A DNA stretch of 32,047 nucleotides from Macrostomum lignano (Eukaryota), in assembly GCA_002269645.1 (NCBI GenBank), contig NIVC01000693.1, forward strand, positions 1 through 32,047, written 5' to 3'. The number at the start of each line of letters is the position of its first letter. Position 1 is the first letter of the stretch. The translations under genes were made by a program, and so were the position numbers. Below are positions 1 to 3,872 of this stretch, piece by piece. The notes below the pieces were generated by a model. That model saw nothing but the letters and a program-made list of their open reading frames with translations, did not search any database and was not told where the DNA came from.

Positions 1-1113
1 CATGCTGGGAAACACTCGGTGCATTTCACTGGGCAGAAGTTCCACATTAAAATACAGCTTTCCTTCTAACTGATTCGAGAACAGTCGGATGTCTTTCCAG
101 ACATGAGCACCGTCGATGACCATCAACCTTACTTTTCCAGGAAGCAACAGTTCGTCACGAATGTAGCACATGGGTATATTGATCTCTCTTTTCGTTTCTC
201 CTGCTATGTTTGTCAATAGCTGCCCCTTCGAATCAGAGAGCCGGGATTCCATATTGATTTTAACATGTCTCACGAAAGAATCAAGATCCCCTCCGCCATT
301 GAATTGTGCATTGTACCAGAAGTGGCACTCGTCGGCAGCTGCATCGCATCTTAGATCAAGATCTCTGAACCCAACCTCATCCGATGTTTGCATGTCTCTT
401 CGTTTTCTTTGGAACTTTAGCCTAAGGGGTTCTTTGTTTTCAAGCAACAGTTGACCATTGAATCTGTACATCTCAATCAGATTTACTTTAACGAAGACGA
501 GTTCATCCGTACGCTGAGCATTGTAGAATCGGCTTAATGATTTATATTCGTCGTTGTTTAATTTGAAACTGATCGCTTCACACGGCTCATTGCTGCTGCA
601 AGCAATGTGCAAAATCACAGTTACCATGGGCGCTACTTGCAGCTCAACCTTGGATAAATTTTCGCTCACAGTTGCGTGGATTGTGTACCCGTGAGCATTG
701 GGAGTGAAATTCAAAAATGTATTTCTTTTCAAGGGAATGTCAACTTTTGGACTATTGTTTTCTTTGCTACGAGAGTACTTACCTGAGATTTCAAGACAAG
801 TGAGTGGCTCGGCTATGGAAAAATTCTTTTTCCAGTGATCAATGGTCCTTCCGTTATTCTTAGTTGCGGTGATCCTCTTCAGCTCATGTTGGGTATTGTT
901 AGCCTGAATGCGCAACTCTCTGATATATACTGGTGTCTCACTGCTGACATCGCAGTCTACTAACAGTTTTATTTCGGCAGAGAATGGCCGAAAAACGACA
1001 GGCTCTTGATTCCATTCTTTTGCTACAATGAACGTCAACTCTTTGCCGCTTTTATCAGTATTTGGTGCTTCAAGATTCCAGCATTTCTGCTCTCGTAATT
1101 CACGGTTCCCATA
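1..1113 (-). CDS. Open reading segment missing from the ORF track (371 codons, no stop, runs off the window)
   Basis: Manual translation: YGNRELREQKCWNLEAP...FSAEIKLLVDCDVSSETPVYI...KVNLIEMYRFNGQLLL...ELLPSEMHRVFPSM, with no stop codon. It is in frame with ORF 1114-1872. Confidence 0.85.
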
Positions 1114-1655
1114 TTAATCAACAATTTCCAGATAGAAACTGACAACCAAACTTCTGTTTGCAAAGGGATTCCAAGCCAGCAGATTCCCAGAGATTTGGCA
1201 CATTTCGATGTTCACCGAAGCCGTGAAAACTCCATTGTTGCTTTGTAGCTCAACATTTCTGAGCTCTTCGCAATTGGAACTTTGTAAAAACAGGCGCTGT
1301 TGCGTTTGAATAGGGCTGTCCGTAACTCGAAATTCGAAATTCACTTTTCCGAAGTACTGCGCCGCAGCTACAGAGCTGGGGTCGTTTGCGCCCCGGTAAA
1401 CTGCGGACACGAGCACAGGCTTTTCTGCTGTTCTCGACTGACTGCCTTTTAAGCTGTCCAAGTTTAGCGGAAGTGAAACTTTCTGGTTGCTTAAAATTAT
1501 TTCGAATTCCTTGTCGTTTGCAAATAAAACTGCATCGAAAAGTTCTGTGATGTAGAGATTTGATTCAACCTGTAAGTTCAGACTCTTCTCATGCACACCA
1601 ACTTTGATGGCATCATTCAAAGTTGGATCATTTGACTCATTTGCATCATTTGACT
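1114..1655 (-). CDS. Segment of the repeat-domain gene downstream of the microsatellite
   Basis: The non-repetitive part of ORF 1114-1872 (ESNDANESNDPTLNDAIKV...VNFEFRVTDSP...GVFTASVNIEMC) contains the repeated domain motif. Confidence 0.75.
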
Positions 1656-1833
1656 CCAGACAGACAGACAGACAGAAAGACAGACAGACAGACAGACAGA
1701 CAGACAGACAGACAGACAGACAGACAGACAGACAGACAGACAGACAGACAGACAGACAGACAGACAGACAGACAGACAGACAGACAGACAGACATACAGA
1801 CAAACAGACATACAGACACATAGACAGACAGAC
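1656..1833 (+). repeat. (GACA)n microsatellite, 178 nt, inserted in coding sequence
   Basis: About 44 GACA units, with a few variants at the right end. The flanks are parts of an 18-bp ESNDAN coding repeat. Confidence 0.97.
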
Positions 1834-2640
1834 CATTTGCATCATTTGCCTCGTTGGAGACAGAAAGAACAAATTTCATTTTCATTTTCAAAGGTTGCAG
1901 CGAGGAATTTTCATCCCAACAAATTTCATTTCGTCCAGGTTTCAAAACTGACAGCAGCAGCTCCGATCTGCCACTAGGGGATTCGCGTAACACCCAGAAT
2001 TTGGTGAGATCCTGATCAGTGCTGCCCCACGAAATCAGGCCGTCACCACTGGGCCTTTGGCAGGCAAGGATTTGTTTTGTTAACTGAAAGCGACCTTGCT
2101 CAAACTTTAGCTTGTTCTGTTTCAGTGGTGCTCCGTTTCCCAGTTCGGGACACGTGCCTGCGATGTACAGTTTCAGTCCGAACTCGGGTCTGCACCCAGT
2201 GAGAGCAAACTGGCATTCGATATCTTCGGCAGTGAGCATTTTCAGAGGCTCATTTTGACAGACGAGAAACTTTTTATGCTGTAGAATCCTTGGAACAGTG
2301 AGCCTGTGGCATGTGCTTGGAGATCCGACACCTACCAGCAGAATTTCGTTTTCCATTAAAAAACGTTGGTCTTCCTGGCTGAATAAAACAACCAGCGGGC
2401 CTCCGGTTCGGATCTGATGCTTCAGCCGCAGTTTTGGTGCATTGCTGAACTTTACAGACAGCTCTTCGCTTGCGGAGTTTAGATGGAAAAGCAGTTCTCT
2501 ATCTATAGAAAGAGATAGATGATGCGGCATGTTGCTCCTCAACTCATGCATAATGACGAATGTTGGTACAAGTGAGCTGCTAGGAAAGGTGGGCCTGAAG
2601 CTTGCCGTTAGCACTAGAGAAACTTCTATCTCCGTTTTTT
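1834..2640 (-). CDS. Segment of the repeat-domain gene containing the clearest CBM20-like unit
   Basis: ORF 1646-2614, whose frame is open upstream to 2656. It includes IECQFALTGCRPEFGLKLYIAGTCPELGNGAPLKQNKLKFEQGRFQLTKQI. Confidence 0.75.
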
Positions 2641-3872
2641 TGGCAACAATTTCTTGTCACTTGACATTTATAGAGTGGCTGATCATTAATGTCTTCCGAG
2701 TCGAAGCAAATCGCCCTGTTACCATAAAAACAGAGCTCGATTTCGGCCACACCAACAAAGCAGTTATTTATCTCTGGATCCAACTTCAATTCAATTCCGT
2801 GCTGATTAAAAAAGTTTCCTAAAATGGACACACAAGCGGCCTCAGCAACAAAATCTTCCACTTGCAGCAGAAAATGAAGCGGCACTCTCAGCGCTGGCAA
2901 AATGGTGAATCCCCCGAGGTCCGCATCGCACACGATCAAAAAGCGATTTGCACCGGCGATTGAATCCTCAGCAAGTTTGATTTCAACCTTCTTCCTAGAC
3001 TCACCTTTGTAGCAGCAATCAAGTGACAATGTGACAGGTGACTGGGTGTCTTTTTCAGAATGACTGAAGCGAGTGGTCACCTGTGTAATTTGGCTCATCC
3101 AGGAAGTTGTCCGGCTGAACCGAGATTGAGGACTCAGCTTGATGTTGCCGAGGGCATCGCTGCACACACTAATTTTGTCTACCCGAAATTTCGTTTCCTG
3201 CACAAAGAACTTCACTTCTATGTCCCGTCTCCTGTAGACAGAAAAATGTTTGGTGTTCCAATCCAGCTCTAAAATAAATGATTGCAGCGGATGGCAGTCG
3301 CCAAAAATTTTGACTTGCTTAAATTTTTTTGCTGGAAATTGATTGTCACCGAATTGAAAGGCCAGACACAGGCAGTCAGCAGTTAACCAATGCAGCAGGC
3401 TGCCATCGTCAAGCTTTACCATAGTCAGGTTCACATTCCTCCTAAATATACCATCACTGCTTTGTATCATTAGCGATTTCCTGCTGAAATCGAGTTCTTT
3501 GCAATTTCCGAAAACATAAGCAGCAGCTGGAATATTGCGCAGGCAAAGTTCCAGTTTGACGGTGAATACAGGGAGAACCTTCAGCTGCAATTCTTAATTT
3601 CCGTCAGTAATTATTTCGTTTGCATGAATTCGCACCGAATTCGCTAGTGGCAGCTCAAGGTCAAACCGGCTGATTTTGCCATTTTTTATGATGGTTAGCG
3701 TTTGATGATTTGTCGTAGTAACAGAACCGGAAAAAATTGACTTGTTGTCTTTCTTCGTCTCGTAAGTTAAAGTGAATTTACACGCATCTTCGCCTTCACC
3801 CACTATCACTTCAGGCAGTTCATGATTTTCTACAGTGCACTCGACAACAATATATAGCACTGCAGCCTTCAT
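2641..3872 (-). CDS. N-terminal segments of the repeat-domain gene (ATG 3872; in-frame TAA at 3594-3596)
   Basis: ORFs 3594-3872 and 2580-3590 are in the same frame and read ...ITDGN*ELQLKVLPVFTV... Confidence 0.75.

Follow-up and report, generated by a model that had tools for sequence, protein, structure and literature searches.

Reading frames at the left end of the window

The left end of a 32,047-nucleotide stretch of the Macrostomum lignano genome (assembly GCA_002269645.1, contig NIVC01000693.1; hereafter the window) carries a long, broken coding frame that is most likely a duplicate of the intact M. lignano gene Mlig026577. The window is eukaryotic in appearance, its left end having a G+C content of about 43% and satellite arrays being numerous. 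All coordinates are window positions, and the chain of open reading frames (ORFs) is read on the minus strand from 3872 to 1. Four listed minus-strand ORFs (3872-3594, 3590-2580, 2614-1646 and 1872-1114) and an unlisted open frame of 371 codons (1113-1) follow one another there, corresponding to five successive open stretches (3872-3597, 3593-2583, 2614-1835, 1671-1117 and 1113-1). Joined with X at the stops and with the microsatellite left out, they yield a protein of 1226 amino acids after four repairs, which continues beyond the left window edge. A sequence-only reading of this DNA had fused the same ORFs into one frame by four local repairs. That frame is present, and the join matches the M. 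lignano protein PAA93800.1 throughout. Because the joined protein aligns end to end with this 1525-amino-acid protein at 76% identity, the chain cannot be attributed to chance. Its pieces are given below, with residues numbered on PAA93800.1.

3597..3872, minus strand: piece A, start codon and first 92 codons; the N-terminus is that of the paralogue (MKAAVLYIVVECTVEN...)
2642..3593, minus strand: piece B, paralogue residues ~95-424; contains CBM20-like copy 1
1849..2634, minus strand: piece C, paralogue residues ~425-690; contains CBM20-like copy 2
1117..1637, minus strand: piece D, paralogue residues ~695-862
1..1113, minus strand: piece E, 371 open codons to the window edge, paralogue residues ~864-1243

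A further ~280 C-terminal residues of the window copy fall beyond the window. Inspection by eye revealed no obvious signal peptide at the protein N-terminus, in agreement with the earlier reading.

An intact paralogue of an orphan family

In a word-indexed search of about 5.8 billion proteins, the sole match of the joined protein was PAA93800.1 (76% identity, 100% query coverage). This entry is the M. lignano hypothetical protein BOX15_Mlig026577g1 (UniProt A0A267H685; 1525 amino acids), for which a CBM_20 match is precomputed in Pfam. Its coding sequence is one unbroken 4578-nt ORF of 1525 codons without introns on contig NIVC01000020.1 of the same assembly (paralogous-locus DNA, L001:10001-14578). 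The large intronless coding unit that had been expected from the window is thus seen directly in the paralogue, whereas the description of the gene as hidden did not hold, the intact paralogue being already annotated in GenBank and UniProt as a hypothetical protein with a CBM_20 match. The GenBank annotation of GCA_002269645.1 derives from a genome-guided transcriptome (StringTie/TACO), from which repeat-overlapping transcripts were left out (Wudarski et al., 2017; PMC5730564). This means that transcripts, and not a repeat, underlie the paralogue model. Genes of this assembly have a mean of 4.9 introns (PMC5730564), so that an intronless 4.6-kb coding sequence is unusual in it.

An exhaustive phmmer search of PAA93800.1 residues 1-1200 against 1.84 billion cluster representatives recovered only the protein itself and P0122, a 4007-amino-acid MetaClust entry. 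With these as its sole relatives, the family is an orphan, recorded so far from this flatworm alone. P0122 is a chimeric gene model, a junk fusion. Identity of its exons to the window minus strand (from ~28438 down to 1) is mostly 85-100%, with a few weaker pieces. The model strings together antisense frames of a K+ channel gene, frames from satellite or other non-coding DNA and three pieces of the broken ORF; it is best regarded as a database artefact and could mislead homology searches. A profile search of the 5.8-billion set with an alignment of the module copies described below (A3) returned nothing and missed PAA93800.1 itself, and was treated as uninformative. Regarding expression or phenotype, the identifier Mlig026577 was absent from the searched full texts and supplements of M. 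lignano expression papers.

Four lesions interrupt the window copy

The differences that break the frame were defined by nucleotide alignment with the intact paralogue ORF, and comprise the following lesions.

3594..3596, minus strand: lesion 1, in-frame TAA inside a locally frame-shifted stretch, relative to L001
2635..2641, minus strand: lesion 2, A7 homopolymer versus A6 in the paralogue, +1 frameshift
1638..1848, minus strand: lesion 3, 196-nt insertion with direct repeats; removal of the 196 nt restores the frame
1114..1116, minus strand: lesion 4, TAA versus GAA in the paralogue (codon 863); interrupts CBM20-like copy 3

Deletions of 5 nt (~3619) and 4 nt (~3588), approximately 30 nt apart, delimit the shifted stretch around lesion 1. 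Lesion 3 consists of a (CAGA)n-rich stretch (1653-1833) plus one extra copy of the 15-bp direct repeat CAAATGATGCAAATG, whose two copies (1834-1848 and 1638-1652) lie in the same codon phase. Within this insertion Tandem Repeats Finder reports an array of ~44 units at 1657-1833. Lesion 2 is the only one of a kind that could be attributed to a sequencing or assembly error. The P0122 exons avoid all four lesions, and this gene model comes from a near-identical, independent sequence (2 differences in 132 residues); its exon pattern is weak evidence that the lesions were present in its source sequence too. Judged against the intact paralogue, the window copy is most likely a recently disabled duplicate and a probable pseudogene, and not a gene that merely needs repair, as had been supposed.

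A duplicated chromosome segment

The homology extends beyond the coding frame. Window 1-4556 aligns to L001 at ~87% nucleotide identity, including the upstream flank listed here, and further upstream window 6226-10828 is collinear with the paralogous locus at 89-94%.

3873..4556, minus strand: upstream flank, collinear with the paralogous locus; presumed promoter or 5' region

On the plus strand, window 25774-27201 holds an ORF for a voltage-gated K+ channel of the Shaker type, with the pore motif TVGYGD in addition to BTB_2 and Ion_trans domains. The encoded protein shares 99% identity with M. lignano Mlig000942g2. The contig of the paralogue also carries Mlig000942g2, and the order and orientation of the two genes match those in the window. 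From this synteny we infer that the window is a homeologous or otherwise duplicated copy of the paralogue segment, and the duplicate may be a homeologue arising from whole-genome duplication.

The frame was preserved whereas amino acids were barely constrained

Among the 17 indels that separate the two copies, 13 are multiples of three. Over 1190 codons, the Nei-Gojobori ratio of nonsynonymous to synonymous divergence (dN/dS) is 0.96, with dN of 0.096 and dS of 0.10. Random placement of the 337 substitutions on the ORF would produce about 12 stops; two are observed, both in the window copy. If half of the substitutions fell in the paralogue lineage, the probability of finding no stop there is 0.002, and that of finding at most two in the window lineage is 0.04. 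The few stops together with the in-frame indels indicate that, for the greater part of the time since they separated, both copies retained an open frame under hardly any filtering of amino-acid changes. On this sequence comparison, the window copy appears to have been disabled late, its frame constraint having been lost only recently.

Divergence is not uniform along the locus. Mismatches amount to 7.6-10% in the ORF versus 1.5-5.5% in flanking unique DNA, and three patches of the ORF (window 301-900, 1501-2100 and 3301-3900) reach 12-17% mismatch to L001 where the local background is 1-5%. Two patches, one in the N-terminal 150 codons and one in codons 901-1200, have a dN/dS of 1.1-1.4, as against ~0.7 in the patch around the microsatellite; synonymous and nonsynonymous changes are both elevated in the high-mismatch patches. 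With two sequences compared, the patches could stem from gene conversion (mosaic ancestry), from a tendency of these segments to indels, or from diversifying selection. Over the last ~330 residues, identity between the paralogue and the window-type copy, the latter seen via P0122, is ~94%, which equals the expectation from 3% local background divergence without selection.

Diverged CBM20-like modules in the encoded protein

Four segments of the protein could be related to one another and, in part, to the starch-binding family CBM20. They are listed with their residues in PAA93800.1.

3249..3587, minus strand: CBM20-like copy 1, residues 102-223; hhalign match to copy 3, E 3.7e-4
1862..2248, minus strand: CBM20-like copy 2, residues 554-685; the Pfam CBM_20 match maps to window 2215-2093
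1006..1350, minus strand: CBM20-like copy 3, residues 785-899; AlphaFold model with CBM20 domains as top Protein Data Bank (PDB) matches
304..657, minus strand: CBM20-like copy 4, residues 1013-1130; leave-one-out profile, score reached by 0 of 300 shuffles

The Pfam CBM_20 match of the paralogue covers residues 565-605 and scores 24.0 bits against a cut-off of 23.3. The isolated copy-2 segment scores 22.4 bits. A Pfam scan of 13 separate segments of PAA93800.1 gave no second CBM_20 match, the other three copies being without one. Sub-threshold Pfam matches with E 0.004-0.25 (among them 3keto-disac_hyd, hGDE_N, and TcdB_toxin_midC at 13 bits against a cut-off of 25) were regarded as chance.

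The relation among the copies rests on profile comparisons. With two-sequence profiles, hhalign aligned segment 100-235 with segment 775-900 (E 3.7e-4, 66 columns, 26% identity) and gave weaker in-register links from both to the Pfam-positive segment. A hidden Markov model built from these two segments, leaving the target out, scored segment 1005-1130 above all 300 shuffles. With a three-segment profile, segment 300-400 reached p ~0.002 and the Pfam-positive segment ~0.05, and a profile of all four copies detected no significant further module elsewhere. Segment-wise Smith-Waterman comparison remained borderline (top scores 52-55 against a null maximum of 52). A phmmer search of the Pfam-positive segment against PDB sequences gave only chance matches (uS10, E ~0.1). 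A regular expression for the motif, devised after viewing the sequence, gave five sites and was not counted as evidence.

These results modify the earlier description of tandem CBM20 domains in several respects. The CBM20 signature motif is present, although it scores below threshold in the window copy and only marginally above it in the paralogue. Of three internal repeats aligned by hand, two (LKVLPVFTV with LQVAPMVTV, and VNLTMVKL..LCLAFQ with VNLIEMYRF..LRLKFQ) fall in the profile-linked domains; the third (VLYIVVEC.. with IKLLVDCD..), between the extreme N-terminus and residues ~905, reached only an hhalign E of 0.25. Four related copies, one with a Pfam match and another with a CBM20-like model, make it likely, though not proven, that four modules are detectably CBM20-like, but they account for only ~490 of the ~1250 residues of the beta-rich region.

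Predicted fold of one module

Copy 3, which has no Pfam match, was modelled by AlphaFold with a pseudo-alignment (A3) consisting of the other copies from both loci. The model has eight strands, with a predicted local distance difference test score (pLDDT) of 68.8 and a predicted template modelling score of 0.62. In a Foldseek search against the PDB (350,542 chains), nine matches had E below 0.001, and every one was a CBM20 domain or a CBM20-carrying enzyme (best E 1.5e-4). These included the starch-binding domain of Bacillus cereus beta-amylase (1cqy, 1b90 and mutants), the CBM20 of STBD1 (8x8k) and glucoamylase (2vn4). Cyclodextrin glycosyltransferases (CGTases), a Pseudomonas CBM20 and laforin (4rkk) followed with weaker E values. 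The modelled module therefore has a predicted CBM20-like fold, and such a fold is likely, but not proven, and only for the four modules. The model of residues 1-1200 was unusable, and at its confidence (given below) about 60% of the beta-rich region is left without a fold assignment.

The glucan-binding tryptophan is replaced in all copies

The tryptophan of the LG.W motif is a main glucan contact of CBM20 domains (W543 in Aspergillus niger glucoamylase, W32 in laforin), and the laforin exchange W32G abolishes glycogen binding. In alignment A3 the corresponding position reads PELGNG in copy 2, where laforin has PELGRW, KELRNV in copy 3, KELDFS in copy 1 and YKPLSP in copy 4, with residues of the types G, V, F/S and P/C in place of the tryptophan. 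An aromatic residue possibly equal to the second site-1 tryptophan is kept (W, W, F, F), in our reading of the alignment only. With the site-1 tryptophan missing in every copy, glycan binding is doubtful. The proposal of a scaffold that binds glycogen or another glycan is consequently retained only in part, namely in its repeated CBM20-like modules, canonical binding being doubtful. Glycogen is perhaps the ligand of the modules, a tentative assignment by analogy, and given the loss of this tryptophan a changed ligand, either another glycan or a protein, would be at least as likely. Our best guess for the protein is an intracellular scaffold built from CBM20-derived modules.

Interpretation and alternative explanations

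Taken as a whole, the observations are best explained, and we think probably so, by window 3872..1 being a recently disabled duplicate of Mlig026577, a lineage-restricted intronless gene with at least four CBM20-fold modules. A segment carrying Mlig026577 and the Shaker-type K+ channel gene would have been duplicated. In the parent-type product, the N-terminal ~1250 residues would form a beta-rich region, followed by a C-terminal part of ~280 residues without recognisable domain. The N-terminal region is predicted to hold at least four diverged CBM20-fold beta-sandwiches (~102-223, 554-685, 785-899 and 1013-1130), which an intracellular scaffold protein would use as binding surfaces. The default ligand would be an alpha-glucan (glycogen) by analogy with laforin, STBD1 and GPCPD1. 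The family would be under near-zero constraint on single residues combined with strong selection for an open frame, a constraint which the window copy may have lost recently.

Several observations weigh against parts of this explanation. The A7/A6 difference is of a type produced by long-read assemblies, the (CAGA)n insert could in principle be spliced out through an in-phase GTATGT...AG pair (by our own reading), and a dN/dS of ~1 gives no contrast between a pseudogene and a fast-evolving parent. The window copy could be a working gene in which the homopolymer is an assembly error, the microsatellite belongs to an intron, and the stops are errors, are spliced out or separate two to three products. 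The location of the A7/A6 difference in a homopolymer, the in-phase donor TCT|GTATGT and acceptor ...CTGGAG|TCA flanking the microsatellite, the predominance of in-frame indels and the presence of two stops where ~6 would be expected under drift since duplication (P for at most two = 0.04) speak for it. Yet both stops arise from base substitution or complex indels and not from homopolymers, no credible intron spans either of them, the P0122 model (2 differences in 132 amino acids) uses only exons that avoid all four lesions, and the parent gene is intronless. We regard a working window gene as improbable. An origin as a transposon, virus-derived element or other selfish repeat would suit a long intronless ORF in a repeat-rich genome that evolves near-neutrally and has no homologues beyond its lineage. 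This origin is largely refuted and was rejected as very remote: Pfam and PHROGs revealed no reverse transcriptase, integrase, transposase, capsid or other such domain, no long terminal repeats or inverted repeats surround the intact copy, only two or three copies are known, all in collinear duplicated segments, and the source annotation left out repeat-overlapping transcripts. None of the outcomes named as contradicting the sequence-only reading was observed, with neither a transposon or viral match nor any sign of separate genes.

The nature of the modules is also open to criticism. The Pfam match of the paralogue is marginal and covers only profile positions 4-43 of 97, and that of the window copy (13.2 bits, E 0.082) lies under the 23.3-bit cut-off. 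A profile of copies 1, 3 and 4 found zero matches among PDB sequences, and AlphaFold modelling of residues 1-1200 with the two-copy alignment reached a mean pLDDT of only 27. The TM-scores of the copy-3 model against isolated CBM20 domains are moderate (0.44-0.57), one of four copies was modelled, with a pseudo-alignment that contained the Pfam-positive copy and may bias the fold, and the LG.W tryptophan is replaced in four of four copies. If the modules were generic beta-sandwiches without CBM20 descent and without relation to glycans, the motif and the Foldseek matches would reflect convergence or model bias. This would fit the match to only 40 of 97 Pfam positions, the lack of a sequence match to any PDB CBM20, the missing binding tryptophan, the composition of the pseudo-alignment and TM-scores of ~0.5. 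Nevertheless we consider it unlikely, since the nine PDB matches with E below 0.001 are all CBM20, from three enzyme or protein classes, with more CBM20 enzymes and laforin lower in the ranking, the modelled copy differs from the one recognised by Pfam, and the copies align in register with the latter. A further possibility sees in Mlig026577 and its duplicate a Macrostomum-specific, rapidly diversifying locus whose modules have swapped glucan for a new ligand. Its frame would stay open while its sequence is driven to change by a role related to recognition, conflict or reproduction. Patch divergence of 3-5 times the local background, patch dN/dS above 1 and the many in-frame indels point in this direction, although we give it little probability. 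If it were true, the window would show a duplicate in the act of loss after a recent whole-genome duplication.

Comparison with known systems

A recently disabled duplicate, as preferred here, can be compared first with its closest relative. Relative to Mlig026577g1 (PAA93800.1), the window copy shares 76% of amino acids and ~87% of nucleotides over the common length, as well as the start codon, domain order and neighbourhood. The database copy is intact, whereas the window copy has two stops, a homopolymer frameshift and a microsatellite insertion, and its ~280 last codons lie outside the window. As in unprocessed pseudogenes after whole-genome duplication, a collinear duplicate with conserved flanks and neighbours carries lesions in one copy only; unlike in typical cases, the functional partner itself evolves at a dN/dS of ~1, and the usual contrast between parent and copy is not visible.

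Laforin (EPM2A), STBD1 and GPCPD1 are intracellular, as the Mlig026577 protein is presumed to be; they likewise have no signal peptide and carry a CBM20-fold module, with the motif G..LYI.G..PELG in common. These proteins combine a single canonical CBM20 with a catalytic or membrane-anchoring part. In contrast, the Mlig026577 protein has at least four degenerate copies in 1525 amino acids, no recognisable catalytic domain and no LG.W tryptophan. Microbial glucoamylase, beta-amylase and domain E of CGTase provide the best structural matches of the modelled module (1veo, 1ven, 1b90, 1cqy and 2vn4, with several CGTases at weaker E values), but these enzymes are secreted, have one CBM20 with conserved aromatic binding sites, and share sequence similarity only in the Pfam motif. 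CBM20 normally occurs once per animal protein, and we are aware of no animal chain that has several. A literature search on CBM20 and flatworms found no paper with CBM20.

In sum, the chain of frames is probably a pseudogene copy of an orphan gene that is annotated, though uncharacterised, and whose multi-CBM20-like architecture is unusual. If the proposed architecture is correct, a single large intracellular protein would combine at least four degenerate CBM20-fold modules, which would be unusual for a metazoan and would represent a natural case of a carbohydrate-binding fold that was reused with all modules lacking the canonical binding tryptophan. The locus would also provide an example of the strict preservation of a 4.6-kb frame in a gene evolving at a dN/dS of ~1, and of a dated duplicate loss in a neopolyploid flatworm. 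Its use for annotation is more modest, namely that the window copy deserves to be marked as a probable pseudogene.

Other features of the window

Upstream of the ORF, ~1.7 kb (window 4557-6225) is without a paralogous counterpart, the corresponding gap at the paralogous locus being ~0.74 kb; this may represent an insertion, a deletion or a mobile element. The open frame of the K+ channel extends past its likely exon end. The K+ channel and the ORF are ~50 kb apart at the paralogous locus versus 22 kb in the window. Large satellite arrays are found at 14347-15403 (34 bp x31), 17576-21024 (20 bp x172), 23492-24516 (29 bp x35), 28611-30969 (17 bp x143) and 31490-32035 (33/47 bp units). Their GC and AT skew is extreme in places, and the repeats give rise to spurious ORFs, the longest of 894 codons. 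The paralogous locus (L002) has sequence that aligns with at least the 20-bp, 29-bp, 17-bp and right-end arrays; differences in array length may account for part of the difference in spacing. An Rfam scan of the whole window gave no match. Approximately 2 kb downstream of the intact ORF, L001:16648-17364 (minus strand) holds a gene for a HAD-family hydrolase, the equivalent region of the duplicate lying outside the window. Finally, a small Gly/Ala-rich ORF at window 11601-11972 (minus strand) shows a sub-threshold Ifi-6-16 match (E 3.7e-6, 27.2 bits against a cut-off of 29.1) and may be an ISG12/IFI6-like gene beside the locus.

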